Of a stretch of 64,000 bases of DNA, positions 10,720 through 62,946 are shown in pieces (position 1 is the stretch's first letter; every line of letters starts with the position of its first letter). Under the pieces are notes generated by a model. That model saw only the letters and a list, made by a program, of their open reading frames with translations. It was not told the DNA's origin and made no database searches. The position numbers and the translations under genes are program-made. The DNA is from Amphiscolops sp. MND2022 (Eukaryota), in contig OZ076421.1 in the NCBI GenBank assembly GCA_964187785.1, positions 51,212,001 through 51,276,000 of the forward strand, given 5' to 3'.

Positions 10720-10786
10720 TCAAAGACTGTAGTAATCCATTAGTGTAGTGGTCACCACTACACTAATGGATTACTACAGTCTTTGA
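10720..10786. repeat. Perfect 67-bp palindrome (33-bp arms, 1-nt loop)
   Basis: TCAAAGACTGTAGTAATCCATTAGTGTAGTGGT-C-ACCACTACACTAATGGATTACTACAGTCTTTGA; arms are exact reverse complements. Confidence 0.95.
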
Positions 10787-10924
10787 AAGTGAAATTTAAT
10801 CAAACTTTGCCTAACGTACACCTTACTAAATTAGCTTGTAAATTTTGACTGTTTTACACCATTTACTAACAACGCATTTTGACTGGAATTCACTGCGTTC
10901 ATATTACACTTTGCTGCAAGGCTC

Positions 10925-24703: not shown

Positions 24704-24897
24704 TGTTACATGAAGATAGAAATAGTCTTCTAGACCCATTAGACAGTACCTGCCGTAAAGAACAACTCTCTTTCTACATGACACAAACTGTGCTATACTG
24801 TCATACAATTTTATTTTTGCATTCGATACAAGTTACTATTGATATTTGTCAATTTTAATTCAGCCTACTTATCAGATGTTTCCCCTAGTCTATTACA
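24704..24897 (+). repeat. Shared middle LTR (3' LTR of copy 1, 5' LTR of copy 2)
   Basis: Preceded by PPT and followed by PBS-like TAGCGTAGTC and a second gag start (24928). Confidence 0.92.
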
Positions 24898-26645
24898 TAG
24901 CGTAGTCATAAAAAGAACTATCAAATAATGAGCACCGACCCCAACATGTCCGAACAATCGGGACAATCCGAACAATCGGGAACACAAGATCAATCAACAA
25001 CGATGGAAAGAAAGGAAAAGAACAAGTACAAGATCCCATTTCTATCAGACCGGGAGAGAGATTTAACAAAAACGAACCCAAGAATGTGGTGGGAACAAAT
25101 ATCGGAACACATAGATCTCAAATACCACAAAAATCTGGAAGATTTGATGAATCACGGAAGTAAAGGTATGGATGCCCATACAATCTACCACCTAAAGGGT
25201 GATGTCATCTGGGATCTGGGCCCAAAAGCAAAGCACGAAATCATGCGAGGCCAATGGGGCCGAGAGCTGAAAGATGGCAATATCCAAGAATAATTGAAGC
25301 TATTCAAAAAGACGTTCATGCCCGTCCGAAATGTATTCCACAGCAGAGCAAAGTTCTTTAATGTAAAACAAGAAGATGGCGAGACACTTGATGACTATTG
25401 GAAAAGACTGGTGGACATTGAGAGAAAATGCGTGTTCAACCGAATAACACCCGAAGAAATCATCACATACAAATTTGCAGCAACAATCAACGATAAAAAG
25501 GCCCGGGACAAATTTATCAAAGGCCCGCTAGAACAACGAACTGTTGTAGAAACCATAGAACTCGACAAATATAACCGTGAGTACGGCGATAAAAAAAACC
25601 AAGAAACGAAAATTCGAAGAGGACTTCCTCAAACAGCTCCTCCAACGGAGAACAAGTTGCCTTCACCAAGCCAGTACGGAAGCAAGCGGAGACCGCTAGA
25701 CACCGAAAGGAAGAAGCCCCCAATCCGAAATTGTCACTTTTCTGGGAAGCCCAATTGGACACCGGAACACAATTGCCCGGAACGGCAATCACAAAGCAAT
25801 CTTGCAAAAGCAAGACCGTGACCCGGGTACACGAAGAAGACGAAACGGACAGCAACACCGAGCCATGGCCTGAAGTGGACCACATTCAATCTACCAACGG
25901 TGTCAACCGGATAGACTTTTACAAACCAATCCTGTTGGTGGAGGGACAGCCAGTAGAATTCATTATTGATACTGGATCTCCAATCACCATTATTCCGCCG
26001 ACAATTAATCCGAAGGAACTGACAACGACGACGAAACGTTTTGTGGACGTTAACAAGAAACCAATCAAATTCAAGGACGAGGCATTGGTAGAAGTCAAAA
26101 CAAAAAAAGCAGAGTTATGCTACCAATCCTTATATCTCAGAATAAAGACACACAGCCACTACTAGGCCTTGATTGGACAGATTAGCAGGAAATCGGATTA
26201 CAAGGTAACTGGAACACGAATATAATCCGAAACAACTGTAGACGAGAGAAATACAAAAATTCATGCCGAATTTGAGGATTTGTTCAAAAATAATCATACG
26301 ATAGAAGGCCTGACAATCGACATCCAGCTGAAAGAAGACGTCAAACACATCCAACAGAAAGGGAGACCCGTACCCATCCACTTCCAAAACAGCGTACGCC
26401 ATGAGTTAGAAAAGTTAATCGAGAAAAGGCACCTGAAGAAGGCAGACGGAACGACCGAAAATTGCTTCATTTCACCAGCAGTAATAACCATGAAGAAAAA
26501 TAAATCGGTCCAACAAGTCCTAGACTCAAGAAAGTTGAATGAATCCGGCATAAAGAGAAAGGCGGCCATGTCAAACATGGAAGAGTTGATCAGCAAAATT
26601 TCCGCAGAGATCACTAAAAGCAACGGAGAAATCTGGATGTCGAAA
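24898..26645 (+). mobile_element. Second, 3'-truncated internal copy of the same Gypsy element (gag, protease, RT N-terminus)
   Basis: Collinear with 19178-20950; stops at ATCTGGATGTCGAAAA (IWMSK) where it joins block A'. Confidence 0.92.
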
Positions 26646-27690
26646 AAAAGTAAGCTTTGATTTTGTCTGAGAGATGTCTTTTATGACAAAGTTGAACTTT
26701 CGAATAATATTGTTGCTCTCAAAACCGTACGAACACTGAGTACTGCCAAAATTTGATGAAGTATCTGATCAGAGAGATCATTTTGGAAGTCGCTGAGGTT
26801 TTTGTCGTGTTGGAAATTTTATAAAACTCGGAATTTACTACGAAAGAAGATGAATCTTGACTATAACTTTTTTCTTGCGTTTTTCCTGCTTCTTTCAGTT
26901 GCCAAAGCTTAGACTTGAACTTGTAGTTGTATACCATATTCCGACTTAAATGTTTCAACCTGAAATGGAGCCGCTTGGTTTTGAAAGGTTTTTTGTCAAA
27001 AAAGTTGCAAAAGCTGAGAATACCAAAAAGATTACCTCACGAGTCAAAAACAGTTTCTTCAACATTTAGCGTATTTATTTACTGTGTTGATTGTTGTGCA
27101 CTTTTCGCGACGATTTTTGAAAGTTAAAGGATTTACTAAACAACAAGTTCATGAGAATACTCTATTTTTTGTAACTTTTCAGTCCATTTTCCTGAAATTT
27201 GAATTTGCTTTTAAAAAGCAAGGTTTTCTTCATCATCCATTTTCATCCAAATCCATCCAAATATCTGTGCTAAAATAAAAACATCCTTTTCCTTTTCAAA
27301 AAACGAAAAACAAGAAAACCTTGATTTTTGGGTCGTATTGACTCAATATTTGATACCCAAAAATGAGGAGGTATTGTCTAATACTTTGTTGAAAATGCCA
27401 AAACTGCTGTTTGTTTAAAATGCTGTTTTCGAGTGTGCTTCATAATCTAATTACTGTAAAAAGTTAATTTGAGAAGCACGCTCGAAAATAGCAGGTGTGT
27501 AAAATTGAGGGGGTAAAAATGAGGTGTGTAAAATTATAAATTATTCGGTTGAAATGTTGCAAACTTTTATTGGGACCATTTGAGAGTTTTTGTTCAATCA
27601 AGCGCATCATCTTGGGGACAGCTCGGAGCCATTGGTCAGCCATAAAATATCAAAGAAAAGAGAAAAAAAGGTTTGATCAAATTATGCCAA
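26646..27690 (+). repeat. ~1.04-kb duplicated block, copy A'
   Basis: Direct repeat of 16200-17237. Confidence 0.9.
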
Positions 27691-30132: not shown

Positions 30133-33100
30133 CGCTGGTAATCGTGGTTTCCTAATTCAGGAGTGTTTAACCAAAGCTTTTTGTCTAGGTGATTTTAACC
30201 AAAAAGACTCTAAACTGATACACTTTTGGGACGCTTTAATTTAGGTATTTGGTGAAAAGTATTCAAAAACATTCGAGTAGGCGGAAAAAAGTTAGAAAAA
30301 TATAATTTTCAGTTAGATCTGGTGTGATTGTTTACCCGGGTTTGAAAAATTCATAATTTTGTAATTGACTTGATATGGAAACAAAAACAATTTTCCTTGT
30401 TATCAGATACAGTTTGGACAATGGACAAGCTGATCGCGATGATTCGAGCTATGATGCTTATCTGCTGCAGTCTTGTGGAATTGGGATATGGGGCTAAGGT
30501 CCCGCAATGTAAGAATGTTTAAGACAATATAAAAAACCTGTGACGTCACTTTTTTGAAGCACATCAGTTGAGGAATGGATTCAGCCGGAAAAAAAGCTCT
30601 CATCGCCAAATCTGAAAAACCTAGTTCGACGTCTTTTGTTTTCAGTGCTCAATTAACGACAATTATCGAATGTTCGTGCGGCAGATTTTAAAAAACTGAA
30701 ACTGGAAGTCAAAGCATCATTGAATACTGAATCAAACATGATGATGATAGTGTTGTTATTTTTCCTAATACAATAAATCCGGTTGACAAGAGTCAAACCA
30801 ACCTCTAGTTGAGGGACGTTTTCACGCTTTTTGCAGAGAAACTAGACAGAATTAATGCAAAACATGAAACCTTCTTAGCGTCTGTTTGGAAGAGTTTGGT
30901 AATTTACTAGCACACTATTTCAATCAAAATTTTGAATAATTTCACCGTATGGAATATTTTGTCTCACACTTCTCAATTATTCATTTCATTTAGTCACCGT
31001 TAGTCAAATTGAACGCAAAAAAAATGTCGCTACTGTGATACGTATAAAGCTAATGAATTTAAATTGCATTAAAAGGCCGGCAAAATTGACAAGACTATGA
31101 TTGCATTGAAACAATTCAGTCTTTTTATGATTTGATACCATTGTGAATTCAAATTATGTGATAGCCGGGACATTTTACTTGAAAAAGTACAGTTTTTATT
31201 GTGTTTGATTCTCTTCTCTCAAACGAATTGAAAGCTGAAAAGGTTTAGTTTTTTTACAAAATTCTGGCACCAGTTTTCGGTATCTGATACTGATTTTGAT
31301 GATTAATCTCATTTGAAGAAGAAATCTCCCTGAAAAGGGGTAAGGCTGTAAACAAATTATTGCTAATACAAATGTTTTTTTGCTAGAATGATTGCTCAGG
31401 AAGAAACTCCATATTTTGATTTTATCTTCACTAGAACACATACAAGTCGCAACAAAATGTATGTATGGAACGAATGTATGAATAGAAACACTGCAAAGAC
31501 TAAATGTTATGTGAACGCGGATACAAGATACTTGCATTTTCGTTTCATTTTCTTAGTGTGCACTGATCTTACATCTTCGTGAACGCAGACACAAATTTCC
31601 AAATGGTACTGCGAAAATGATGGCCCAACTAACTACAACCTCGACTTCAGTACAGCAACTCACAGTTTTCAATTTAAGAAGTGGGATGTCTCAAAAAAAT
31701 GTGAGTTAACTTTTATTGCTTTGTAAACAAACAACGTCGAGCTACTTCCATAGTCAATACTGCTGTACCTTTTTACATTCACTAACAAGTTTTTTCTCAT
31801 CCAACCTAGAACATTTTGAGTTTGATTTTGAGGCGTATTCCCTAGCGCTGTAAAGGTCCTTTCTGCATCCCGGTCAGGTATGTGTCCACAAATGAAAAAA
31901 ATCCAATTTTGATTTGATTGTGTTTAGTTTATAACATTTATATTTATCAAACCAAATGAATTCAATGTTTAAATATTCAGGTAATTCTTCTGATGAATTC
32001 GCATGATGGTAAATCACACTTTGATTTCTAAACTACTCATCTGATGTAATCACATCTCAAATAGTAAGCTGAAGGTAACTCTAGTTCACAGTTTTCAACT
32101 TGACTGAAATTATTGTAATTTCAAATGGCGATGAAACTTATCACAACTTAACTCTAAAAGTAGAACCTAAAAGAGGAACAATATCCGAAAAAAACATGCA
32201 TAACTTCAGAGCTTGAAGTTACAGTAAAATGAGGATGTATTTTCAGGCAGTTTAACAACATTCGAAAACAAGAGGGAAATTTCCAATTGGAAGTTTCCGA
32301 GAGGATTTGAAAGATCATTGACAACTTTAAAATGGACGCAAAACGTTCGAGCAATTTCAGCAAGGGTCGAAATTGAATGGTTCAAAATTTTGTCTCGGGC
32401 AAAACATGATATCTTTGCACGTGATGCGTCGAGCACTTTGGGAACGTGCAACGGATTGATCTAATTGGACAGAAATCACATGTTGATTTTCACGAATTGA
32501 AGAATTGTTTCACTAACCTCAACACTGTTCCATGGCATGCAGGAACTACCGTATTTACTATCTAGATGAACTAAAACCGGAGCCCGGACAAATTTTCGTG
32601 CTTTCAAAATTTTATATTTCATGTTTTGCTGGTTTCATTAGGCAGCACTTCTAAATTTAAAAGCCGTTGAGACCTCATCAATTTTACCGCAATTCCAATG
32701 CAAATAAACTTCAATCACGACATAAGTTTCCAGGTAGCGTCATATTCAGCGTGCTATTTGACCAACGGTGACTACATAAGATACTTATTTGAGAAACGTA
32801 AGCGTGAAAACAAAATGTTTGCGACGGTGAGGAAGGGGACATGTTTTAATTGAAATAGTGGAAGCTGCATTGTATTCCTACAAAATGTCTCCCTGAATTT
32901 TCCGTGTTTTGTAAACCGCACATTTCGCGTATTTCCTCGTATTTCGCAGCCAATTAAAATGCCGCATATCCGATTGCATATTTCGTCGTAATCGAGTGTG
33001 ATAGCTTGCAAAGATGAATTTGAACTGCCTCAATCAACAAAACAGGTTACTATTTGAGTTTGTTTTGTTCGTTCTTTCACATTCCGGATTGGACTCAATT

Positions 33101-40163: not shown

Positions 40164-40916
40164 GATATCAATCTAAAGCATAATTTCACATATCACAGTT
40201 CAAATGGGATATTTCAGTGTGCTTTAGCTGGTTCTTGGGCTCCAATGAATATCTTCCGCCAGCCACGAATTGTATTGTAAGAGAAATCAGGAATTTTCCA
40301 TCAATTATGGCAGCGGTTCTTGTAATCAACACAGGACCTGGATGGCACTAAATATAGCCTAAACCAAAACTATAGGCATGGAAAAAGTGCACAATGTGCT
40401 TGAGAACAAATTTTTATACTTAAAAAGTTCTAGTAATTATTCCAAATATTGCAGGAAAAAAGTCGTCCCATATCACTGTTTTGATGAACACTTTTGGGGG
40501 TCCGAAAATTTTTCTAGTTGCCGTAGGTGCGTCAAATCACCACTGCGTAACTTGTACCCATAGTAAGTGACGAAAATGGGTGCAATGTAGACCAACTCTC
40601 AGCATAGCTATTTTCAGACGGTGCGAGAAGTTAACTTCGAACATATCCTTTTTCGAAAAAAACATACATAGGTACACTCAGGCATCTAAAACCACTTGAT
40701 ATCAAACTAAGGCATAAATTCACATATCACAGGTCCCATAGTATACGTCAGTGTGCTTTAGTTGGTTCTTGGGCACAATTAAAAAACTTCCGCCAGCCAA
40801 GAACGGTATGGTAGGAAACATCAGGAATTGTTCCATCATTTATGGCAGCGGTTCATGCAATCAACACAGGACCCGGAGGGCCCTAAATATAACCTAAATT
40901 AAAAGTATAGGCATTG
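40164..40916. repeat. Pair of ~215-bp diverged direct repeats 534 bp apart
   Basis: 40164-40379 aligns with 40698-40916 (GATATCAA..CAGTGTGCTTTAG..TATAGGCAT). Confidence 0.85.
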
Positions 40917-44310: not shown

Positions 44311-44510
44311 NNNNNNNNNNNNNNNNNNNNNNNNNNNNNNNNNNNNNNNNNNNNNNNNNNNNNNNNNNNNNNNNNNNNNNNNNNNNNNNNNNNNNNNNNN
44401 NNNNNNNNNNNNNNNNNNNNNNNNNNNNNNNNNNNNNNNNNNNNNNNNNNNNNNNNNNNNNNNNNNNNNNNNNNNNNNNNNNNNNNNNNNNNNNNNNNNN
44501 NNNNNNNNNN
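44311..44510. other. Assembly gap of 200 N
   Basis: Run of N. Confidence 1.
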
Positions 44511-45689
44511 CAAACTCAAAAATTGTTTACACATTCATAATAAGTCCTACTACAAGGCTTTTGACATCTACTAACTTGAAACACTATTTGCGAAACAACT
44601 ATTTTCGCACTCGCTATTTTGCCATTTAGGTAGTAAGTAGATTTTCTGGTTCCATCAGTTGTTTTACCACCACAGAGTGAAACAAAAATCAAATTTGAGA
44701 AGAAAAGATCGTCAAGAAACGTGCCGTTGCTTATGTATGAAAACATAAATCTTGGTATACAATCTTTCATCTGTTTCGGGGACTTCGCGTAAAAATCTAA
44801 TAAAATTGATCATCGATAGCTGAAATTTTTCTGCTTCGCTAAATATCTAATTAGTGGTGTCAGAACCCTGTTTATTTCATCAGTCTTGTTTCATTCACTC
44901 ATCATTGAATTGTCAAAATCATGAAAACATCTGAGTTGAGTGATAATAACATCTTTTTCTGAGCTAATTCAGCATTTTTGAGATTTTGGATTCCATGCAT
45001 GGACCATGCGATTCCATCAAAAAACATGGACCATGTATACATTTTTCACATTAAAAATGCAATGAAAGGTTAAGATCCGTGATGGTACGGTTAAAAACAC
45101 AATTAGACTTCAATCACAGTCAACTGACTTCTCAAAGTATCAAACAATATTATCGACAGTACACCGAGAAGTTGGAAACCGGCCTTTTAAATGCCTGTCG
45201 TACTCATAGTTGAAGCTTCATTGAAAAAAACTTCTATTTTCGTTTTCAAAGGTGACCTACTGTGTTACTAGAATGGGAGAGCAAACAATTATTCAGTTAT
45301 TGAAAAAGGCAAACTTTTTGAAATGCAACATTTTTTGCAAATTTTCATTTTTTTTCAGTTACTTTTCTGCCAGTGGCTCGGAGGAAAAACTATGTTGAAA
45401 CAATCAAAGACTCGCTCTAGTTAGTCCAAGATATTGTTAAGGAAAACCAATTTTTGTTTTCCTACATGTTTTCTAGGTTTCGTATATTTTTAGTCAGAGC
45501 TTTTATTATTAAAAGAGCCCGACTATTACAGTCCTTCGTTTTTTTAAGACAGACTCGAAGCGACGAACGTTAAAATTAACGTTGAACTACTAATTGCAAT
45601 ACTACTAAAATACTGGCAGCGCATTTAAGATAGTGCAAAGGGTCGCCCCTTTCAGTTAGTCCATTGTTATCGTAACCTACAAAACCGGC

Positions 45690-45975
45690 CGAGACTAAAG
45701 GGTCCCCCTTTTGATTTTTTTCGGCACTGTGCGACTTTTTTTTCGAAAATGTTTTAATGTCCCAAAGGGTCCCCCCTTTGAGTTTTTTTGTTATTTTGCA
45801 ACAGAATGCATGTTTATAAATCAAAAAGGGTCCCCTTTCTACATTTTTTGGCACTGTGTGACATTTTACGAAAGAGAAAAATTTTCGAAAACTTCAAGTT
45901 TTTTTCCAAAAAAAAAATGTTTTGCGCTTTTTGAGCCTTAGATATAGCGCCGACTTTAGACGTTCTCGTCTTGTT
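45690..45975 (+). mobile_element. Second copy of the repeat family at 9921-10313
   Basis: AAAGGGTCCCC / TTGGCACTGTGCGACTTTTT subrepeats and 3' end GAGCCTTAGATATAGCGCCGACTTTAGACGTTCTCGTCTTGTT. Confidence 0.75.
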
Positions 45976-48136: not shown

Positions 48137-48431
48137 TGAATTCGGATTATGTTACCTATTCGCATAACCCAGGTACACCTTGTTTCTCATAAACTCACCC
48201 CCCCCCCCAACAAGTTTTATGCTTGAAGACATCTAGGGCGAATGAAAGAATTTGTTATGGCTATAAATACTTGAAGGATTGTCTGTAGAATTGTTTCGAC
48301 TCTGGCGGCTAAAAATTATCGTGACATTTCGACATTTCTCTTTAAAAAAGCAAAATTTCACCCCTGGAACAAGTTGAAATTGTATAGAAAAGCCCTCATT
48401 TTCACGCAAGCTTTCTTCGGATGAAATTAAA
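48137..48431 (+). CDS. Probable upstream coding exons 1-2 of the host gene (48137-48172, 48388-48431)
   Basis: AG/GT-bounded, phases 1-1 and 1-0, splice in frame into exon 3 giving NSDYVTYSHNPEKPSFSRKLSSDEIK; first acceptor and donor are weak; no start codon found. Confidence 0.5.
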
Positions 48432-48714
48432 GTGAGCGATTTTTAAAAACTGTGAATCAATGAGGAATCAAGATAGGATTATGTCGACATCAATTATTTT
48501 ATTGGAGCGAAATATCAGAGCAGACGATATCGACATTATAGTAATTGAACCATGTTTTTTATCCCTCGGCTGCTCGAGGGAAAAAAGAAACGTGGTCCGT
48601 AGATTCTCTTTCATTGATTGACTGCAAACGAAGTGCACTCAAAAACACACACTTTCTGGAGTACTTCTTCGAAAAAATAAAGAAAAACGATTCTCAACAT
48701 GTGCCCTTTTTCAG

Positions 48715-50299
48715 ACCGAAGACGAAACGCAGAACTTCATAACTGCCGCAGCGGCTGCCGAATTCAAGCAAGGATTCGGTAAGACGTCCAATCGTTACCA
48801 AGTTTTGCTTTAAACCTAATTTGTTCCCTTACATGTTACAAAGTTTTACAAAGTTGTGTTCCATTCGTTTTTCAGAAGCTGCGGACGGCGTAATCACAAC
48901 TGCAACCGAAATCATCGGAATTTTAGATAACTTCAACAAATTTGATGAGATTGGCAATGATACTGAGGCATACTACATGTATTCATATGGCGACACTGAA
49001 ACCGTTTTCAAGAACGTAGTCTTCTACTTGTCAGCTGCTCGAGTGAGTGATTACTTTGACCAGATGAATTGGGTGACTTTCGTCTAATGAAAAAAATATG
49101 CATTCATTTTTTCTTAACGCCAAAATTTTTGTTTTCCTACTCAATTAATGGAGAGCTGAAACTAAAATGTGTTCGACAATTCTAACGTTTAAAATGATTA
49201 CATTTTAGAGCAGTCCCGCTGAAAAGGTGGCCTTTCACCGAACAATTTCTGAATTTGCTGGAATAGTGCTGTAGGCCGAGCTATCGAAATTGAAAACGGA
49301 AGAAAAATTCTAACACTGGGTTATTGAAGAAAATTAGCTTCACTCGGGTTTCTAGGGATAAAGTGGGAATCAGAAAAAAAAGATTACATGTTCGCATCAA
49401 GGCCTGTGCAATATTTAGTAAAAAACATGCAAAGTTTCCGCGGGGATGGCCATCCTGGGTAATGTTTTGCGACTTCAAACTACTGCCATATCCACGTTGA
49501 ATTTTTGAGACAGCTGGTGGATAAAATTCAGCAAGGAAACAAGTCAATTGTTGCGGCAATTTCAATTTCAACTGGTGGCAGTTTGAAGTCGCAAAAAATT
49601 ACCCAGGATGACAATCACCGGCGGAAACTTTGCAAGTTTTATACAAAATTTTGTACAAACCTTGATGCGAACCTGTTATCTTTTTGTTGACAGTCCAGCA
49701 TTTACTTATGCGCTATCACCCTTTATACGTTGCTTACTATGACGTAGCTATCTTTTCTCTGCAGCATACAGAATACATCCCGGATTTGGGAAGCGGTACC
49801 GAAGATTTTCAATGATGTTACGGAGGTTATAGTTTAAAACGCCGTATTCAATAACCACAGATGATTCAAAAATGCTTCTACTGGTAATCACTGCTGCTTA
49901 ACGGTGAACTGCCAGCATATCCAGATTTAAATATTTGTTTTACATGCGAACAAAAACTTATCAAATATTTTTAAAACTTTCTTTTTGGCAAGCAGCATGT
50001 TGCTTTTCTAACGTTAAAACCTTCGAAACTTTCTTGGACTTTCGCTTCTACATTTATGCATGTTCCGGAAAAATTTTGATGATGTGTCTCCTCCGGAAAA
50101 TTCTTCATCCTTCATTAGGCGATCTTTCGTGAGCTCTGTGATAATAAGCAGTTTAGCGCTTACATGTCGATGTGGGTAGAATTTGAGAAGGATTGACTGA
50201 ATATTATAGTACGCGGAGATGGTTGACGATACAGATGGTCGATCAAATGCAATGGGTGGACCGGAAGTAGCTGATGAAGAGTGTCCTAAGGTTTACAAG
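48715..50299 (+). CDS. Core exons 3-7 of an unidentified host gene (48715-48778, 48876-49042, 49209-49270, 49765-49825, 50210-50299)
   Basis: Acceptors TTTTTCAG, TTTTTCAG, ATTTTAG, CTCTGCAG, ATTATAG; donors GTAAGA, GTGAGT, GTAGGC, GTTATA, GTAAGT; phases 0-1-0-2-0-0 give one uninterrupted frame. Confidence 0.8.
49377..49685. mobile_element. Foldback MITE (~310 bp, ~130-bp imperfect arms) in intron 5
   Basis: GATTACATGTTCGCATCAAGG..TGCAAAGTTTCCGC..CATCCTGGGTAAT..GCGACTTCAAACT mirrored at 49560-49685. Confidence 0.85.
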
Positions 50300-50341
50300 G
50301 TAAGTCTGTTTATGCCAGCAATTTAAATTGATACTGGAGAC

Positions 50342-50656
50342 AACAAGACGGGGACGACCTAAGTCGGCGCCCAGCTCAAGGCTCAAAAGACTAGAGTTTT
50401 TTTAAATATACAAGGGACACTTTTGTCATAAGTTTATGAAATTTACAATGTCAAAAAATAGCAGAAGTGATACGCATAAGACTCGAACCCGCTTTCCCCT
50501 ACCTTGAAACATCAAAAAACGGATATTTTTTCTAACACATGAAATTTTCGAAATGTTTTTGCTCGACCAAAAATCCCATAGTGCTAAAAAAGAAACTTTA
50601 CGCTCGCAAAACGAAACGCTTTTTTTCAGGCTGAAAACATATATCAAAGTGAAGGG
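50342..50656 (-). mobile_element. Third (minus-strand) copy of the SINE-like family, interrupted by the BEL element
   Basis: Reverse complement contains GGGTTCGAGTC (B box, ~50480-50490) and the 3' end TTTTGAGCCTTGAGCTGGGCGCCGACTTAGGTCGTCCCCGTCTTGTT. Confidence 0.6.
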
Positions 50657-51120
50657 TGTAACAGCTGCCTGATCCATTCACTTGACCAAACTTTACGCCG
50701 CCCTGAATTCGGTGCTCGGCACTGCGGATCTGTACCGAACTTTGATTGCTTCTTAGAAAAAAGGACTGATTCTTGACTTAGTAGGTTCCATTGATCCCGA
50801 AATCCACTTCTTCTTTGTTCCTTAACGCGACCAACTCTCCACAAGAGAGAGCAACTAACTTAGTCGCCCTGAGTCTTTGGCGAAAAGTCGAAAAGAGGTA
50901 AAGAAATCAATTGAGAATTGAAGAGGTCCTGGGACCCAACTCGAATACAACTTCCCAATTGCTTTGTGTCTAACTAGGTATGGTATAAAGCTCGTTCAAA
51001 ACTATTCGACAAAGATAAGCAAAAATATGAAGTATAAATAAATGACAATTAAGTGACCTTTTAAGATATTGGCTATGTAAACAAAGTATGCGGCGGATAT
51101 GGCATGTTGGTAAGGTGACA
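50657..51120 (-). repeat. BEL 3' LTR (464 bp)
   Basis: TGTAAC...GTGACA on +; homologous to 55827-56304. Confidence 0.9.
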
Positions 51121-52798
51121 CTCTTCCCAATAAGAAGTGATTTGGTGCCAAAGCTTCCAAGTCATCAGGGTCGTCACTAGCACTAGTCAGGTGTCCTTGC
51201 ATTCAACGTCTGTTCTACTAAGCCACATAGTTGTTATCACGACGTCGTTTGTCGAGGATCGTCCATCCAATACAGCTATCATTGCTTTTTTGCAGCTTCG
51301 AACCAGACGTTCCCATATTCCTCCAAAATGTGGAGCCCTAGAGGGTTGAATTTTCACTTGATGTCCTTTCGAGCTAAAGGTTTCTCAATATCTGCCTGAT
51401 TCCATGCTCACTTCTATAGGTACACTCACGAAGTTTGTTCCATTGTCGCTCAAAATGGTAGTAGGTTTGGCTGTCCGGGCAATACACTTTGTTACAGCAG
51501 TTAAGCAGGTCTCTGCTTCCAAAGATGGAACAACTTCAATGTGTACTGCTCTAGTCGTCAAGCATGTGAGGAGACAACACCATCTCTTCATAGTTTTACG
51601 CGAAAATTTAACTTGAAAGGGACCAAAATGTTCAACTTCAGTGTTGGTAAAGGGGAACACTCGTTCCTGCTATCTCTCTTGCGGTAAATCAGCCATAAAA
51701 GCTTGAGACATTCCAGCTTGTTGCTTTCCACATTTCACACATTTCGCATTGATGTTCCTCAGAGCGTTTATCAATCCAATAATCCAAAATTCCTGCTTGT
51801 GAACACTTCTGGCGTATTCTGTGCCTTCATGGAAAATCGCTTAGTGAGGGTCTTCAATCAACTTGATGACAACATAGTGCTTTGCTGACAACAACATCGG
51901 GTGTCTGACCTCATAACTTGACTTTGAATGCTGCAGTCTGCCTTGTATTCGCAGCAACCCCTTTTTTGTCCAGAAACGGCAGTAATTTATTCAATTGATC
52001 TGACGCCGACAACGGTTCCCTTTAGAGATCTTCTCGTAAGCATCATGAAAATTTTCCTTCGGACAATGTTTCAAAATTGCCAGCTCTGCTGCATTGAGTT
52101 CGTCAACTGTCAGATTTCCTCCAGAAATATTTTCCTTCCACCTTAGGCAGTATGACAGCACTCGAATCATTTTCTTGAAGGAACTAAATCTTTCCCACTG
52201 GAATGGGGGTTCCATTACAACAGCTTCCATGAATGGTTCAGGCTCCTCCTGAACGCTGAATTGCAATTTTTCAGGAACCTTAGGCCAGGCGACTTCCGTC
52301 ATACTCAGCCAGACCGGTTCTCTTAGCCACCCGCTCTCTTTTAGGGCTTCAACTGTCATTCCACGAGAGCCAATGTCAACGAGGTTCAGTTTTCCTTCAA
52401 CATGCCGCCACTGATCGATAGTTGAAATTTCGAGGATTTCAGCAACGCGGTTTGCCACAAAGACCGGTTGTTTTCTGTTGCTTGCGTGAAGCCATTGTAG
52501 GACCGTTGTTGAGTCTGTCCAATGTACGAATCGATCTACTTCAATTTCATGTCCTTCTAAAATGAGGTCTCGCAGTCTTACCCCAAAGACTGCAGCCTGC
52601 ATCTCCAACGTAACCACTGTCATATTTCGTATTGGAGCTACTCTACATTTTCCGATCACAAAGGTCACTTTGGCATTGTCTTGTTTTCTCAAATAGGCAA
52701 TCATACCCATTGCTTCCAACAAACCATCTGAGAAGATTTGTAGATCCACTTTCTTCAATCCTGACTCGAAGTATGTTCTTTTAAGGACCATTTGATTC

Positions 52799-53883
52799 AG
52801 GCCCGCTATGGTGTTTCCAGAAGGTCCAAGAACAATGAGGAAGCGTTGCAGATGCTAGAACAAACCACAAAACTTGATGGCGAAAGAAACAAAGTTGGCC
52901 TTTCTGGAAATGAAAAGTTGCCCTTCTTGCCGAACAATTTTTCTTCGGCCTCGAGACAAACGAAGTCGTTGGGGGCATAGACTCGAAAAGAAACCGGAGT
53001 TGAAGAAACTCTATCAACACTCCATCAAAGTAGCTGTTGAGGAAGGATTGCTATGTGAGAGTCCTAATGCAGGGTGAGTTAGAAGCCACAAAACTGGAAA
53101 GACAGTGGAATGTACCACATCACGCAGTTGAAAACCCAAACAAACCTGGGAAAAAGAGGCGAGTCTGCAACGAAGTGTCTAAATTCAGAGGAAATTCACT
53201 GAAGGATAACCTCTTGACAGGACCCGACCAACTGCAGAATCTGATTGGAAATATCTTCAGGTTAAGAGAACAAAGATCGCGATTACCGCCGACATAGAGG
53301 CGATGTTTCCTCAAGTGAAAGTACCACCAGAAGTGTTGTGATTTTTATGAAGAGACAACCCAAACAAACTCGTCAAGGTGTATGAGTATGGAAGACATAT
53401 CTTCGGAGCAAAAAGTTCGCCAACTTGCGCTAATCATGCTCTGCAACAAGTTGCAAAAGATAACGCACAGGAGTCCCCCACAAATTACCAAACTGATAAT
53501 GCGAAGTTTCTATATGGATGATTTTGTCAAGTCTGTTCCCAGCACTGAGCAGGTTTTTGAAATCTACCAATTGTTGCGAGCAAATTTTGGAAGTGCAATG
53601 GAACGTTAAAGCGGTCGATCTGGAAGTCTGAAGAGGCATGCAGAAGGAGATACCAGCGAAGATAACTCAGAGAGCGGTGTTATCCCATGTTTAAGCTGTG
53701 TTCGACACTCTGGGAATAGTGTCTCCTTTCAGCATAAGATAGCGACTGCTACTGTAATCAATATGGAAGGAGAACGGACAGTTGTGGGATGAAAAACTTA
53801 ATGAAGAAAACCGACATGAATTCAAGAAATGGGCATCAGAGATGATTCATGTGAATCCAATGGTCCTTTAAAGAACATACTTC
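52799..53883 (+). pseudogene. BEL reverse-transcriptase segment inverted relative to the rest of the element
   Basis: RT motifs read on + while gag, RNase H and integrase read on -. Confidence 0.9.
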
Positions 53884-55359
53884 TGGACCAGACGACTGCA
53901 TCTTGCGTAACAGCGTCTGAAGAAGATGCGCTGGAAGAACAGATAAAAGCTTGGTGGGACATTGAATCATATGCGAAACACCCTGGAGGTTCGAAGTTCC
54001 CAAACTGCACATGCTGTTGATCTGTCTTGTTGATTTGCATCTTCGCTGATGCAGCTTTCGGCGCGAATCGACTGGCCGACGTACAATCCTTTATCATGGT
54101 CGGCTGGGCCGTTTTGGCACCAGGTGGGGCATTTGTGTTGTATGTGGCAAAGAGTCAGGTTTCGGTTGAATGGGCCAGCAGTACAACGCATTCATGACTA
54201 ACCCCACTGTCCTTCCTCGTTGCTTTGCTCTCGTGGTTGATCTAATCTAACCACGACGGACCCTTTTCGAAGAGGTCGCTCTGAGCGGCTGTTGGAGAGA
54301 CACTCCGAAAACTAATGGTTTCCCGACTACTCCCCGCTCGAACTACTTCTATTTCCTTTTCTGAGATTCGTAAGGCTATTGCCTTCTCCTCTTGGAGTTT
54401 AGCAATTTCGAGTTCTTCTGTGAGATTATCCATTTTCTCATGTTTCTTTCGGATCTCGGCTTGACGTTAGTTTGCCGCTAATTGTTCATCAATTTCTTCT
54501 TGTTTCTTCAATGCTTTGTAGTAGTTGTCTTTGAACCAACTGATGTTCTGTTGCTTTCGGTTCGATCTCGTTGTGAATGTTTGCTCAACCTCCCTATTGG
54601 CAGTGGTTTAGACTCTTGGTACTTGTCCGATATCTGATCCTTATGTTCTTTTTGTACGTTCTCAAGTTCTGACTCTTTTTGGGGTCAGGGTGCGCTTTTG
54701 CGAGATTTGTCTGCTGTGGAGTTTACACGAACGTCTGCCAGTCTTGTTCATTATCCTCCAGGCTTCGCAAAATCGCCCCCACGTCTCTTGACTTCAGCGA
54801 AGCTTCAATTTTTGTTTTGATATCTGACCTCTTTTGAAGCAACTCTTGACATTCTTCTTCGTCAACCTCTATGCCGTTTGCGATCGCATCATTCCGCAAC
54901 TTTCCATTGCTAACCATTCTTTAATTAAGAGGACGTTTCTTTTCCTCAAGATCCAAATACATTTGTATTTCACTTCCATCGCGCATTGCCGACATCAGTT
55001 TTGCCAACCTTCCATTGCTAGAGTTTTGTTGCTGCAACGTCTCAAATCGGCTCTTCATTTCTTTGTTCTCGTATGCTTGATCTGAGGTTGACACTTGAGC
55101 TTTATTGCTTTTTGAACTGCGTCTATGAGCTTCTGAGCGGTTTCCTATATCCGAGACAGTAATTCAGCTATTTGCTTATCATCATGGTCGTCTTATAAAC
55201 TCTCGTCAATTTCTCTTCTCGACTTACCATGATCGACAGTTTGGTTTTGTCTGCTGAGTTCTTTGAAAAGTTTTGCAATTTTGTTAGGATCAAAACGTTT
55301 GGATTCTGCAATTTTCTCACTTTGCAATAGAATTCGATTTACACAGTCACAATAACCCA

Positions 55360-55490
55360 AACTCCCAGAGACACAAAGAACAATTCTCCCAGAGACACAA
55401 TAGACCAAATTCCCAGAGTCGCAACTGTCCAAACTCCCAGAGTACACTGTAGCCCAAACTCCCAGAGTACACTGTATACCCAAGAACTCC
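55360..55490. repeat. ~24-bp tandem repeat CCCAAACTCCCAGAGTACACTGTA in the BEL leader
   Basis: About 5 degenerate copies. Confidence 0.75.
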
Positions 55491-55684
55491 AGTAATCCCA
55501 CTCCGAATACAATATCCCGGAGTCTGCAGAGGTACTCCAAGCCCTAGAGTATACAATTTACCCAGAAGAGCCCAGATGAGACCACTTTGCAGCAAACACG
55601 GTTTTGTATGGATCACCAACAGTCGTCGTTCACTGTACACGTTCACTTGTTCGCACGGTGCTTTTCTGGATGTGTAGCAGTTAG

Positions 55685-55810
55685 ATGATCATCCAGTTGT
55701 CCGCCCAAATGATGATGTCCGCCAAATTAATCATGTCCGCTCAATTGATGATGTCCGCCCAATTGATGATGTCCGCCCAACTGATGATGTCTGCCCAGTT
55801 GATCATGCCC
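55685..55810. repeat. 18-bp tandem repeat TTGATGATGTCCGCCCAA directly next to the BEL PBS
   Basis: About 6-7 copies. Confidence 0.85.
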
Positions 55811-55826
55811 GGGTCTGCGCACCAAA

Positions 55827-56304
55827 TGTTACCTCTGCTTGATGCCTCCACTCGACCAAACTTTACGCCGCGATGAATTCGGTGCTCGGCACTGCGGTTC
55901 GTTACCGAACACTGCTTGCTTCCTAGAATAAAAGGACTGTATCTTGTCTAAGTAGAATCCAATGATCCCAAATTGCACTTCTTCCTTGTCTCTTAACGCG
56001 TCCAACTCTCCACAAAGTGAGAGCAACTAACTTAGTCGCCCGCCCAACTAACTAAGTCTTTGGCGAAATGTCGAAAAGAGGCAAAGAACTGAATTGAGAA
56101 TTGGAATGTTCATGAGACCCAACTTCAATGCAAATTTCCATTTGCTTTGTGTCTACCTAGGTATGGTATAAATCTCGTTTACCACTATTCCATAATAATG
56201 AGTCAAAATATGAAGTATAAATAAGTGACATTTAGGTGAACTTTTAAAGTTATTGGCTATGTAAACAAAGTATGCGGTGGATATGGTATGTTGGTGAGGT
56301 GGGC
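55827..56304 (-). repeat. BEL 5' LTR (outer terminus damaged)
   Basis: Starts TGTTAC on +; ends GGTGGGC instead of GGTGACA; 17 mismatches in the first 100 nt versus the other LTR. Confidence 0.88.
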
Positions 56305-57466
56305 TCAGAAGCATGTTTATACAAAGTAAATATCACCAATTTCAACAGAGTTACTTTCTAAGAGGATCATATGGGTAAATAACAAAGTTTAGGCTTTGGC
56401 TCATTGACCTCGAACATTGCACATGTGCGGGGTAACGGGGGTTATAGTGTGTGACGGACGTTGAAACTTGGCCGGTGTGTTCGTGTTAGGTACCTGAATA
56501 TGTGTACCAAATTTCATGGCTGTATGGTTCATAGTTGTCGTGAAAACCCAGTTGGGGAGTTGCAGGTTTATGACGATTGGATTTTCTTCAATTTTTTTTG
56601 TGTTTTCTGAGTTTAAGTCTTGTTTCTCAACCAGCATGTTTGAAATTGACTTTCTTCGCCTGCTGATGACTGGCGCCAACAAAGGGTATCCTTTCACTAA
56701 GTGAAAATTGTATTGCAAAAAGTCGCAGTGTCAAAAAAAATCATATGTGTTTTCAACAACCATTGATGAAACTCATCAGTTCTAAATGATTTAAAAGTTT
56801 GGAAAAAAAATCATTGTTCCAAAAAACGCAAATAATGGGACCATTTGGGTTTTTTACCATCCAATTGTGTGCAACAGATCAAAAAGACAACAAACAGCAA
56901 AGAGGGACCCCTCGACGACAAAAAATAGGAAAAAGTCTCAATGCCAAAACAAACTAGTAAAACCAAACATTCTGTGTTGTCTATTAATGAAAATGCTGCA
57001 AAAATTATGCTACCCAAAGGCGGCACCCTTTGCAATGCTTTCTAGTAAGATAGGAAGGCCTATAGAAATTTTGTTAGAAAGAGGACCTTTCAATGTGATG
57101 TCTGACAAAAAATTAAGAATAGTAAGAGTCGGGCATTTTCTGTTTCAAAAAAGTGCCGACAAAAAACTACCAACCAACAATCACCAATTTTGAAACCACA
57201 TGGTTCATAATTTTAAAAAATTAAGTCAAAAGCCACATGAAGTTTCAAACAATTTTTTTTGTAACTAACGTTGTCATCTACAGATTTTTACCAAAAAAGT
57301 GATGGAAAATTATTGCAAATAAAAAGGAGCGGTTCCAAAAACACGTAATATTTTTTGTAAGCTGTTGCGTAACATGTAGTAGTAGTAGTAAAAGACTCAA
57401 TTCCAATTACGGAAATTATTTAACAAAGAAAAATAATTATAGCGAACAAAACATAAATCAGTTGAA

Positions 57467-60304
57467 TTAGGACCTACAACAAGTGCACATACATTTGAGG
57501 TAGAAGCAACAAGAATTATCGATGTTAAAATTCTTTGTTAGCATCTTGGAATAACAGTCAAGAGAAAACTTTAAAGATGATAGAGACATGGTTAAAGATA
57601 TAACATTTTGACTTAAGAGAAAGTTTACAGAACGTGTGGCTCGTACGAAGAAGTTAGCGTTTGAGCCAAGTTTTTTTGTATCAGGGATAATAAATTGATT
57701 GGCCGAAGATGCACGCGTACAAGAGGCAACATTAGATGGACAGTATTCACAATCAACATCACTATTGTAAATTTTTCACAGTAGAATCACGTCAGCTTTG
57801 ATGAGTTGGTAGCAGATTGGAAGAAACTGTAGCTGGAGCAGACCTGAAACATAGTCCTCTGATGAAAACATCCATTTCAAAACTTTATATTGGAATTTTT
57901 CTAGTCTTGCAATATACGTGGAGGAGGGAAACCACACAGGAGAACCGTAGAGAAGAACAGATAAAATAATACTTCGATAAAACAGTTTCTTTCTGACAAT
58001 AGAACAATTGAATGGAACATTGCTTCGAAGAAACCCAAATATTTTTCGAGCAGTGGCTAATTTATGGTCAATGTGGCTGTTCCAGCTTAGATTGTGAGTA
58101 GTCAGGAAGCCCAAATCTTTTATATTGTCAACCACCGGAAGATCATTGTCGCCAAGAATGAATGACTCATCGAAAGACGAGGAACCAAAAGGTAAAATTT
58201 TGCACTTTGAAGGGTGAAAGATCAGACCGTTGGCAATACTCCAAAGACACAAGTTGTCAATATCACTTTGAATTTGGCGGGGATCAACATCGAACAACAC
58301 CTTCATATCATCAGCAAACAAGAAAGGAGTACCATAAACTATTAAGTTTGGCATATCGTTTACAAACAGGATAAACAGTAATGGACCCAGTACACTGCCT
58401 TGCGGTACACCAGAAGAAACGGTTATTTTACTGGAGAAGGTATTATTAAGTTTTACACACTGGGAGCGTTCATCCAGGTAAGAAGAGAACAAGCGAATAA
58501 AATCTGGACAGAACCCGAATTTCACAAGTTTTTGCAGAAGTAAGTGATGAGGCACTGAGTCGAAAGCTTTTCTGACGTCGAAATATGCAGCTAATGACGG
58601 TACGTTGGAATCAATATTACGGTAGACTTTATCAAGATATAATATCATCTGCGTTACAGTACTTCGTTTTGTCATGAAGCCGTGCTGGTTTTTAGTAATC
58701 GAATTTCGGACTTTTGGATATATAAAATTTAAAAGTATACGTTCCAAAATAACAGACAATTTAGGCAAAATACTTATTGGTCGATAGTTTTCTATCTGCG
58801 TTCGCGGACCATCTTTGTGAAGAGGAGTAACAAAAGACAACTTCCACACAGCAGGCCAAGTTCTATTATGTAAAACCCAGTTGAAGAGTTCAGTAACTAT
58901 GGGAGTAAGGATCTGAGAACATCGATATAGAATGAAGGAGGGAATACGATCTGGACCAAGGGATGACGAATCATTGCCTTGACTAAGCATGAAAGTAACA
59001 GTTTCCGCCCGAATAGAAACATCATCAAGACAAATTTTGTGATCTGAAGACATGAAAAGAGTAGGTGGGGTGATGGTTTTGGGACCAAATACTGATCCGA
59101 AATAGTTATTAAAACAGGTTGCTTTCTCACTTTCAGTATGTAAAACTTGATCTTCAAAGTACATAACAGCAGGATATGATTGACTAAAACCTAGTGAACG
59201 CAGAAGTTTGAAACAGTCTGTTGGCGACTTTAAGCTGAATTGCTCAATGTAAATGTGTTTGTCAAGTTCAATAGATTCAGAGAGGACACGTGTCAACTCA
59301 ATATGCTTGATTGAATTGTGGAGCGACCAACCTTTGTTCAATTTTGTTTGGTTAGTTCTAACAAGATTGAGAATATGGATTGTATGTGATGAGTAGAAAG
59401 CTGGAAAATGAAGTCTTTTGGAACGCTTGAGCTGCAGAGATCTTCCAATAGATTGGGTTAAAAGTTCATACCATTCGTAAGGATAACAGGGACTAGACAT
59501 GTTATCAAGTGTTATGAAATTGAATAAAGTTTCAAGATTACTGTTGAAAAGGAATTGGTCAAAAGAAGATTTGGAGAACGATTCAATACAAACTGGTTTA
59601 GGCAGGCAGCAAGACGTGTAGATTAATATTGGAAAATGATCAGAAAACAACTGTTGGTGAACATTGAAAAAGCTAGTGTCGTCATTTGTTAGAATCAGGT
59701 CAAAAATGTTTCCCAACTTATGAGTCGGGACATCGAATAACTGCGAAACTGCTAACAGGTCAGAGGTTTCAATAAACTTTTGCTCATTAGTATTTGATGA
59801 TGTTAGAGTAATCCAATCGATTTCAGGAAAATTGAAATCGCCGAGAATGTATAAGATATAGTCTTCACCAAAACCACATTGATAACTCATTGAGGCAAAT
59901 TTCGTAATATAAGAATGTAGACATGATGTCAAAATCTTGCAGTCTATGCGGTATTCAGATGTAGAAGGTGGGAAATAAATAAGAACGAAGCATATGAGTT
60001 TCACGTCAATAATAACACAGGCTACAGAGAATTCGTAGTCGACAATAGAAACATCCATAATATTCAGGTTGACATCATTTGAGGCACCAATCAAAACACC
60101 ACCATGAGAGCCAAAAGAACGGTCAGAGCGAGAGATAACAGTGAAAGAATTGCCCAGAAAAACCTCAGAATTCTTTACGTCATTTGAAAGCCATGTTTCC
60201 GTTAAGAAGATTAAAGAAACAGTGTTGACAGTACATAACTTGTTCAAATTTTGCCTCTTTTCAATGCTACAGATTGACTGACAATTCACCAAAAGACAGT
60301 TTAG
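57467..60304 (-). CDS. LINE ORF2: apurinic-like endonuclease + reverse transcriptase, one internal TGA at 57776-57778
   Basis: LTETWL, GDFNFP, DLILT, SDHFPI (APE); YRPISIL, QHGF, KAFDSV, GVPQGSVLGP, FADD (RT); frame continues 102 codons past the TGA to CCFYLKCMCTCCRS-TAA. Confidence 0.93.
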
Positions 60305-61189
60305 TCAGTCCGTTGGAGTTTCGACTGGTTTGCCTTGGTAGAAAAGCTGCAAGTTTTGGATGCGGAAATCCTCTCTCTCTTTACCTTCCGACACCATAGA
60401 ATAACGCTTTTGTAGTACAGCTTTCTCAATTTTACGTTCAGTAGGTGTCAAGAACTTCTTGACATACACTGGATCAGTGTATGTTTTCAGGTAATGACTT
60501 CTGGCAAAACAATTTAGTAGAAAATGACTGTTTGATGTAGAAATCAATAAAGGACGACAACTTCTAGGTGTGTTATTGGCCGGATTTATTTTTTTGCCAA
60601 GCCTTCTCACTGCAGTGACATTGCCTTCAGTTTTCAGACCCATGTGACCAAGGATTTTGTTAACACTTTCCGAATCATGTTCAAGTTGCTCAAAGTAGGT
60701 TGACCCACTTTCACTTGCACCAGTAAGGACAAAGTTTAATTCAGAAGATGGAGCCGATTTGTTTAAATTTTTGCCAGTTACCACGTCTTTATATGAGGGT
60801 AGCGAGTCAACGACAGCAGTTTTAACTTTTTCATTCAATTCAATTATTACCTTTGGCAAAGATTCATCGATTGCTTTAGGGATAAGTTCAGCAACAGAAG
60901 TTTTGATTTTAGAAGTAAAAGAATCAAATAATGATGTCAACTTATCTTCGGAATTGTTGGTGAAAACTTCATTATTCACGCATGAATTGCACACCCACAA
61001 ACAGTTGGGATTTGATCCAAGCCATTCAAGATCATTGACACTCAAGTTGACACATCCACCGTGGACCCAGCCGTTGCAAGAGTGGCAGCAAATTCCTGAT
61101 TTGTCATCATCCTTGACAGCCTTGTTGCATTCCTTGCACAGAGTGGATGAAGCTTTGGAATTGTTCCGTAGTTTGCGAACATTCGCCAT
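60305..61189 (-). CDS. LINE ORF1 with N-terminal PHD (C4HC3) finger, 294 aa from ATG 61189
   Basis: CKEC...CHSC...HGGC...WVCNSC spacing; intact frame. Confidence 0.92.
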   Translation of the reverse strand: MANVRKLRNNSKASSTLCKECNKAVKDDDKSGICCHSCNGWVHGGCVNLSVNDLEWLGSNPNCLWVCNSCVNNEVFTNNSEDKLTSLFDSFTSKIKTSVAELIPKAIDESLPKVIIELNEKVKTAVVDSLPSYKDVVTGKNLNKSAPSSELNFVLTGASESGSTYFEQLEHDSESVNKILGHMGLKTEGNVTAVRRLGKKINPANNTPRSCRPLLISTSNSHFLLNCFARSHYLKTYTDPVYVKKFLTPTERKIEKAVLQKRYSMVSEGKEREDFRIQNLQLFYQGKPVETPTD

Positions 61190-61493
61190 AACATTCAATA
61201 TGAAACTATTTAATGTAATACACTAATGTAATACACTATTGTTCACTAAAGCTGTTGACAAGTTTCAAACGAATGAAGTAACAACTGACTGGTTGTTAAT
61301 TTTGCTTGAGATTGCATTTGTCAATCGCTTTAGTGAATATTAGTGTATTTGTTTCGTAGTTTGAAGTTTCTACCGAATATGTTTTCAGAGTTCGAAATAT
61401 TCTGACAGCTTTTAAACCAAAACACTTAGAATGACAAGAATATTAGCATGCGGAACAATCACTCATGTCTTCACAAACAATTCATGTTTTCAG

Positions 61494-61616
61494 TTGATGT
61501 GGGGATCGGACTGTACATGCCCGGAGAATGAAAAGAAGACAAATGGAGGAATCTTGGAAAAAGCATCGATTGCTCTTCCAAGTGTCCTTCTGTTGTCTTC
61601 AATGCAACTTGTCTGA
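61494..61616 (+). CDS. Probable terminal exon 8 of the host gene, GPI-signal-like C-terminus
   Basis: Acceptor ATGTTTTCAG; phase 0 matches exon 7; encodes LMWGSDCTCPENEKKTNGGILEKASIALPSVLLLSSMQLV-stop. Confidence 0.65.
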   Translation: MMWGSDCTCPENEKKTNGGILEKASIALPSVLLLSSMQLV

Positions 61617-62946
61617 GAGATCTCTTCAGCATGGAAAGTCTACAAGGATTGTTGAAGTTCTACCTTGAGCCGAAACTGAACACAGTGAATATGCACTAAA
61701 CACAACAATTCATTTCTTTCAATTTTTCTGATGCAAAAGCACGTACGTTTGAAACGAATGCATTTTTGTAGGAAAGTCTTACTTAGTGAATTGTTATTTA
61801 ATGGAAGCCAAATCTCAAATTGAAGCCATTAGAATTGTCAACGAAGCATCGGATCAATGAATTGAAAATTGCTGCGTTTTCATTTATCTTGTAAATAGAT
61901 ATGAATATTTTTCATTATTATTCTAGAGCTCCGACTTTTCAACTTTTGGTTTTGTTTTGTTGTTGTTCAATAACGCTATTTCACAGATGATTAAATGCAG
62001 AATGAGTTGTTTTCTCAATCTTCTTTTGGACCCTGAAAACGTTTTTTTTTTCATAAAAGTCGGATTCCAAGTTGCTTGGAATGACAATGAAAAAATTTGG
62101 AAGTTGCAAAAAATACGAATACTATGATGTAAATCTATTTCAATGAATTATCAAAATAATTTAATAAATTTACAAGTATCTATACTTTTTTTGAAACTCT
62201 GGGAGGCTCGATTTTGGGACAAAAAAAATCAGTTTTCTCAGACCAACGGCGTCACTTGTACCAAAAAATGGTACTTCATGGCAAATAAAATTTTACACCG
62301 CCGAGGACATTACGCCGTTCAAAGCGGACATTACCTGCAACAATTTGAAAGATTGTTTCATGTATAAATATCGGGAACGAAGTCAACTTTGGGCGCAATG
62401 TCATAAACTTTAGCTTGAACACAATCTCATTTTTTTGTCTTTCTAGGGCAGATTAAATCCGAAGCAGACTTCAGCGCAATTATGACTGCGTTATTTTTTA
62501 ATTGAATAAACACGCAATTGGCAACTGACAACATGTCAAGCAAACCAGTAAGGCAGTTTTTAGTCGGCAATTTCGTCGAAAAAAGGCAGATTAGTGGTGG
62601 CTTTTTTATTTAAAGACCAGCGAATTGGCACATTTCTATAAGTCTTTCTATAAGTTCAAATTCATGAAACGTTTCATTTGAAATTTTTTGGTACACAATT
62701 AATTTACTGCTTCGTCTACAGGTTAACGAAAGTTTCTTTCAATGAGTTCCACTGCGTGTACGGTGGTTTGAATCCTGCGCTGAAACCAAAAAATTTCAAA
62801 TGTAGAGGCTGACTAAAATTACCACAATAGAATATCTTTGCATATTAGAAGCACTTTGCTCTGTTTGAAACTTGAACGGGCTTTTAGAACATTGAGGAAA
62901 CAAGTCTCCTGTCTAGGCGTCCTGAGCAGTTTCTCCTTACGTGTAG

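Follow-up and report, generated by a model that had tools for sequence, protein, structure and literature searches.

The stretch of DNA analyzed here, referred to as the window, comprises 64,000 nt of Amphiscolops sp. MND2022 (assembly GCA_964187785.1, contig OZ076421.1, positions 51,212,001–51,276,000, forward strand). It is AT-rich (~36% GC), laden with transposons and interrupted by one gap of 200 N at 44311–44510. An earlier note on this DNA proposed that a gene with eight exons, hidden between positions 48137 and 61616, encodes a protein of no recognised family that is probably attached to the membrane by a glycosylphosphatidylinositol (GPI) anchor. The positions of its exons and of the other features are collected in Table 1, where the exons are numbered as in that model.

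When the eight segments were spliced, the chain and its 214-aa peptide were reproduced exactly. All eight acceptors are AG, all seven internal donors are GT, and the single open frame ends in TGA at 61614–61616; exons 1–8 contribute 11, 14, 21, 55, 20, 20, 30 and 40 codons in frame, respectively. It should be mentioned that such a chain taken alone is weak proof of a gene, because short open segments bounded by AG and GT are abundant in the DNA of the window, where the mean open frame is 18 codons.

Much better evidence was provided by paralogous loci. The exon 4 peptide had three genuine matches among 1.84 billion cluster representatives (phmmer), all of them raw open reading frame (ORF) calls from the metagenome-style ENA assembly ERZ25074608; the E-values of the paralogous exon 4 fragments were 7.7e-9 and 6.5e-7. 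Three other phmmer matches (P0004–P0006) were spurious, being long repeat proteins matched through multiple short stretches. Among the loci compared, L004 is the window's own locus (100% identical). L001 and L002/L003 lie on separate contigs at the same coverage of 91–98x and are therefore paralogues in the same organism. In total, three loci of the family were found in the assembly.

The most complete of the comparisons is that with L002, which carries exons 3 (65% aa identity), 4 (44%), 7 (55%) and 8 (53%) in this order on a single strand, with splice positions and phases homologous to those in the window. Exon 3 has the same length in the window, L002 (9925–9988) and L001 (4901–4964), with 78–81% nucleotide identity, and its acceptor TTTTCAG and donor GTAAG/GTAGG are common to the paralogues. 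In exon 4 all indels between paralogues are multiples of three, and conservation stops exactly at the GT donor. The counterpart of exon 7 is located at 10629–10715 of L002 and keeps the acceptor context tgaatRttatag and the donor GTAA, while exon 8 is collinear with L002 11051–11254. In a three-way DNA alignment the similarity is high in exon 3, collapses in intron 3 except for GTAAG and TTTTnCAG, and is high again in exon 4; identity amounts to 0.69–0.81 in exons versus 0.44–0.62 in the interior of intron 3.

A comparison of nonsynonymous and synonymous substitution rates (dN/dS), suggested in the earlier note as a check, was run against the paralogues and gave values of 0.38–0.52 (0.39, 0.38 and 0.52 for the three paralogue pairs; Nei–Gojobori method, NG86). 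The GC content of exons 3–8 is above that of the introns and is highest at the first codon position. The restriction of conservation to exons, the shared splice sites and phases, the dN/dS values and the GC content together indicate that exons 3, 4, 7 and 8 are real coding exons under moderate purifying selection. As judged from these comparisons, the locus is a genuine spliced protein-coding gene in a transposon-rich animal genome.

Half of the proposed eight-exon structure thus stood, and the other half found no counterpart in the paralogues. For exons 1 and 2, no similarity was detected in any paralogue locus at either the protein or the DNA level, and no counterpart of exons 5 and 6 was found in the paralogues. 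The latter pair was compared with a 99-nt stretch of L002 that may be a middle exon at the equivalent place, and the score matched the average of the shuffles (p = 0.51). Many other solutions exist between exons 4 and 7: 510 AG..GT candidates in 1.17 kb yield 27 single-exon and 658 two-exon alternatives that are free of stops and preserve the frame, and exons 5 and 6 of the earlier model come 10th when ranked by a crude splice score. As the end of exon 4 and the start of exon 7 fall on codon boundaries, the frame does not depend on this pair. One or two small exons may be located between exons 4 and 7. A second copy of the gene model was not found within the window by tblastn.

The paralogues themselves differ in their state of preservation. 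In L003 (ENA ctg181277), a 5394-bp tandem duplication (4918–10311 / 10308–15701, 99.93% identity) includes exons 3–4, and the duplication in L002/L003 ends a few tens of bases past exon 4. Exon 4 of L003 could splice in frame into the second exon 3, giving a duplicated domain; or the duplication is an assembly artefact. L001 carries exons 3–4 at 4901–5211, and its exons 7–8 and 3' untranslated region (3'UTR) were not found up to ~20 kb downstream (L005). The stretch of L001 homologous to the possible middle exon of L002 holds a stop, and L001 is probably a truncated or decaying copy. On the sequences compared, the family shows typical birth-and-death dynamics.

The long last intron and the 3' end

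The join between exons 7 and 8 had been named beforehand as the point at which the gene model could be refuted, if exon 7 were spliced to a different downstream exon. In L002 the homologous exon 8 lies only 335 nt after exon 7, and this spacing confirms the join; the corresponding interval in the window is 11.2 kb. The comparison indicates that the last intron of the window copy is an ordinary short intron inflated by a long terminal repeat (LTR) retrotransposon and a long interspersed nuclear element (LINE). The first of them, an old Pao/BEL element, contains a Peptidase_A17 ORF at 51991–52791, and an rve (integrase) ORF was called on the identical ENA contig. The LINE matches Pfam RVT_1 (2e-29) and Exo_endo_phos_2 (1.6e-7) and has a 96%-identical copy elsewhere in the assembly. 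Its best named relatives are insect elements (Manduca, Tribolium), with only 28–32% identity.

Downstream of the stop codon, the 3'UTR can be aligned to L002 for ~570 nt with 64% identity overall, and the similarity stops after the poly(A) signal. Since conservation runs to the AATAAA and the T-run and then stops, exon 8 is the terminal exon and its 3'UTR ends near 62190. The last ~80 nt of the 3'UTR (62097–62176) are 89% identical to L002 11718–11846, which is above every coding exon (69–81%). This conserved end is AU-rich and forms no significant structure (RNA fold z = -1.4). Its conservation may reflect regulatory constraint or gene conversion.

The C-terminus of the protein and alternative explanations

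The properties of the protein described earlier were all recovered in the spliced product, namely a pI (isoelectric point) of 4.4, three Cys, the N-glycosylation sequons NDT and NTS, and a hydrophobic end running to the stop. The secure core encoded by exons 3, 4, 7 and 8 is 147 residues long in the window copy and 176 residues long in L002, and in each case it has a pI of ~4.1 and three Cys at conserved places. L002 contains a 27-residue insert rich in Pro, Thr, Gln and Gly (QTTGQ repeats) immediately 5' of the Cys cluster. This insert resembles an O-glycosylated stalk; such stalks are common in GPI proteins.

Substrates of GPI transamidase have small residues at the omega and omega+2 positions, a polar spacer of ~5–10 residues and a hydrophobic end of ~10–20 residues, with no cytoplasmic tail. 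The C-terminus of the window copy consists of EKK-T-N-G-G, the spacer ILEKAS, the tail IALPSVLLLSSMQLV and the stop; that of L002 consists of EKK-E-N-G-A, the spacer IWETTP, the tail MLVLGVLLLSSMQLI and the stop. By rule-based inspection, small residues occupy omega (Asn) and omega+2 (Gly/Ala) at the same aligned position in both copies. In each of them a 6-residue spacer is followed by a 15-residue tail directly before TGA, without cytoplasmic residues. The mean Kyte–Doolittle (KD) hydropathy of the tails is 1.87 in the window and 2.27 in L002, and the best 19-residue KD window reaches 1.3–1.5, the usual transmembrane cut-off being 1.6.

Of the protein features described earlier, the GPI-like C-terminus gained support from the conserved N-G-[GA], spacer and tail and from the stalk of L002, and the sequons are not conserved. 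On this rule-based inspection of the C-terminus, GPI anchoring appears to be the best reading of the protein, with odds somewhat better than even. Taken as a whole, the locus is best explained as a gene of an orphan family with a GPI-anchored product (probability about 0.6). The product would enter the endoplasmic reticulum through a putative N-terminal signal peptide. GPI transamidase would then cut the chain ~24 residues before its end, at the Asn conserved in N-G-[G/A], and attach the GPI anchor there. In this way a small acidic domain (with the motifs NFNKF, VFKN and SAAR, followed by a three-Cys juxtamembrane segment) would be exposed on the outside of the plasma membrane; in L002 the domain would sit on the Pro/Thr/Gln-rich, probably O-glycosylated stalk.

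Several observations weigh against this explanation. A signal peptide was not established in the 48.7 kb of the + strand scanned upstream, where hydrophobicity, donor strength and phase are all that speaks for the candidates. The part VLLLSSMQL of the tail is nearly invariant through synonymous changes, which is tighter than a discarded GPI signal strictly needs, and the mature protein may therefore retain the tail. The paralogues do not share the N-glycosylation sequons. The gene model is known here from genomic sequence alone, and members of the family decay, as seen in L001, so that the window copy, although its frame is intact, could have become a pseudogene recently.

The last two points, together with the missing 5' exon, would suit a window copy that is a non-functional relic, filled with transposable elements (TEs) and no longer correctly transcribed or spliced. 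The 11.2 kb of TE-filled last intron and the miniature inverted-repeat transposable element (MITE)-like insertion between exons 4 and 7 are in line with such decay, as is the sister copy L001, apparently truncated and with a stop in its middle-exon homologue. However, TE-filled introns are normal in this genome, and the four conserved exons are all intact, as are their splice sites, while the stop codon occupies the homologous position. In addition, dN/dS is <1 in every comparison with the window copy and the region of the poly(A) signal is 89% conserved, and we consider a relic unlikely. Slightly lower still do we rate a cytosolic protein that is tail-anchored or embedded in the membrane by its C-terminus in some other way. 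Its acidic domain would face the cytosol, its hydrophobic C-terminal segment would be inserted after translation, and its Cys cluster would be palmitoylated. The unusual conservation of the tail at the amino acid level agrees with this, as do the failure to find a signal peptide near the gene and the position of the three Cys, 17–30 residues before the tail; the Q/T/G-rich linker of L002 also fits a cytosolic disordered region. Against it, the hydrophobic stretch of ~15 residues, which includes Pro, Ser, Ser and Gln, is short and weak by its 19-residue KD value, no basic residues flank it, and N-G-[GA] with a 6-residue spacer is exactly the geometry of an omega site. Finally, it is hardly credible that the whole chain is a chance string of short open segments in AT-rich DNA. 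Stop-free AG..GT segments are indeed very common, and exons 1, 2, 5 and 6 have nothing beyond that; for exons 3, 4, 7 and 8, chance is excluded by the exon-limited conservation, the splice sites and phases, dN/dS <1, and the conserved 3'UTR and poly(A) signal.

The 5' region and other features of the window

A start codon or signal-peptide exon had been reported as not found, and in agreement with this none was detected within 3.6 kb 5' of exon 1. Farther away, the ATG exon at 30421 is the best signal-peptide-like candidate on the + strand of the 48.7 kb upstream; its phase suits exon 1 of the earlier model, and an arthropod-type initiator (Inr)-like TCAGTT is located 5' of it, at 30310. A second candidate begins at 40484. 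Either of them is a speculative first exon of this gene, or part of something else. A search for a shared 5' exon in the upstream regions of the window and its paralogues (tblastx, blastn) matched only a MITE. In L002 a tRNA-derived sequence (9340–9480) resembling a short interspersed nuclear element lies ~450 nt 5' of exon 3.

Table 1. Positions of the exons and other features in the window
Feature	Position	Strand	Characteristics
Speculative first coding exon	30421–30508	+	K/R n-region, 10-residue hydrophobic core, G-Y-G then A; strong donor AAT/GTAAGA (cut at the slash), phase 1
Second speculative signal-peptide-like ATG exon	40484–40562	+	Weaker candidate; perfect donor, phase 1
Exon 1 of the earlier model	48137–48172	+	Unsupported; GC 0.39, as in introns; poor polypyrimidine tract
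Exon 2 of the earlier model	48388–48431	+	Unsupported; GC 0.36, intron-like; poor polypyrimidine tract
Exon 3	48715–48778	+	Coding, 64 nt; phase 0 at the start and 1 at the end
Exon 4	48876–49042	+	Coding, 55 full codons; invariant motifs NFNKF, VFKN, SAAR
Exon 5 of the earlier model	49209–49270	+	Possible; GC 0.47 versus 0.30–0.40 in the flanking introns
MITE-like palindromic insertion	49374–49688		Matches its own reverse complement over 330 nt with 75% identity; between exons 4 and 7
Exon 6 of the earlier model	49765–49825	+	Possible; good polypyrimidine acceptor, weak GTTATA donor, GC 0.44
Exon 7	50210–50299	+	Coding, 30 codons; phase 0 at both ends; one Cys conserved
Old Pao/BEL LTR retrotransposon	50657–56247	-	LTRs 50657–51064 and 55827–56247, 83% identical; in intron 7
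Non-LTR retrotransposon (LINE)	57776–61198	-	ORF2 57776–60292, endonuclease and reverse transcriptase; ORF1 60305–61198, PHD-like finger; in intron 7
Exon 8, coding part	61494–61616	+	Terminal; WGSD, Cys cluster, EKKxNG[GA], 6-residue spacer, 15-residue hydrophobic end, TGA
3'UTR of exon 8	61617–62195	+	AATAAA at 62163–62168, T-run just 3' of it

Besides the elements listed in Table 1, a MITE-like repeat with several AAGGGTCCCC units was revealed at 45631–45975. The paralogue contigs carry further copies of the AAGGGTCCCC repeat (L001 6039–6528 and 8295–8625; L002 3183–3344 and 8573–8734). Degraded remains of Ty3/gypsy-type LTR elements are located on the + strand at 11140–15215 and 20886–26660 and contain fragments of protease, reverse transcriptase, RNase H, integrase and gag split by stops; they coincide with GC-rich, strongly AT-skewed stretches. 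At the gap at 44311–44510 the contigs of the independent metaMDBG assembly from ENA are also interrupted: a 425-kb contig carries the ORFs at 33–42 kb, and a 56-kb contig starts at about position 44924 of the window. The first 2000 nt of the window have a GC skew of -0.43 and contain three + strand ORFs (202–828, 975–1358, 1324–1866), with no Pfam match except for a sub-threshold SAM_CEP-1_C.

Relatives and comparison with known systems

Relatives of the protein were sought in databases with single-exon pieces or exon alignments, and at this sensitivity the earlier statement that the protein belongs to no recognised family holds. No match was obtained for six exon peptides in Pfam (E up to 10), for an exon-4 profile in PDB (hmmsearch, E up to 10), or in an Rfam scan of the window. 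In word-indexed protein searches the exon-4 alignment retrieved the same three ORF fragments only, and the exon-8 alignment retrieved none. A scan of JGI metagenomes with the exon-4 alignment gave 599 pattern matches, of which 0 were confirmed. Thus, no relatives outside one organism were found among billions of database proteins, at a sensitivity at which single-exon queries could miss distant or full-length orthologues of <~35% identity. An AlphaFold2 model of exon 4 built from the three-sequence alignment (predicted local distance difference test, pLDDT, 57) consists of a helix followed by a hairpin and is too poor for a fold search. As far as these searches go, the family is taxonomically restricted and has so far been seen only in this organism.

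It can be suggested, though this is doubtful, that the locus belongs to a young lineage-restricted family of at least three loci, with a new fold presented on the surface via GPI, a variable mucin-like stalk and post-transcriptional control through the end of the 3'UTR. If this were true, the product would be a fast-evolving surface protein of the sort used in immunity, gamete recognition or host–symbiont interaction. Confirmation of the GPI-anchored product would mean that the GPI-anchored surface proteins of an invertebrate lineage include a family not recognised before. The gene is a clean example of TE insertions that stretch an intron from 0.3 kb to 11 kb and do not destroy the gene, which helps in correcting gene models of genomes rich in TEs. 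Nothing points to an unusual mechanism, and the value of the finding lies mainly in annotation and is not conceptual. To our knowledge, orphan families of this kind are numerous in every invertebrate genome.

Among known systems, GPI-anchored proteins share with the predicted product the omega and omega+2 residues, the spacer and the hydrophobic tail, as well as an acidic ectodomain with few Cys and, in L002, a Thr/Pro-rich stalk. They differ in that the ectodomain described here matches no known GPI family and in that its tail is conserved more than usual. The Ly6/uPAR GPI proteins of insects (Drosophila Sleepless/Quiver, Boudin) are likewise small, multi-copy and fast-evolving, with a GPI-type C-terminus and short multi-exon genes. 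The three-finger fold of Ly6/uPAR proteins is defined by 8–10 conserved cysteines. Membership in this family was rejected: both the window model and the paralogue have only three Cys, all near the C-terminus, and no Pfam UPAR_LY6 match.

Tail-anchored proteins (GET/TRC40 clients) resemble the product in that the only hydrophobic segment lies at the very C-terminus and that, so far, no signal peptide has been found. A tail anchor is a C-terminal transmembrane helix of ~18–22 strongly hydrophobic residues, whereas the segment described here is short, weakly hydrophobic and preceded by an omega-site-like N-G-[GA]. A gene of a transposable element was also considered and rejected, as the exons contain no TE domain, only three loci of the family were found, and the similarity is confined to exons, splice sites and 3'UTR. 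With the orphan gene families of invertebrates the gene has in common the lack of an outside relative, local duplication, partial copies and moderate dN/dS.

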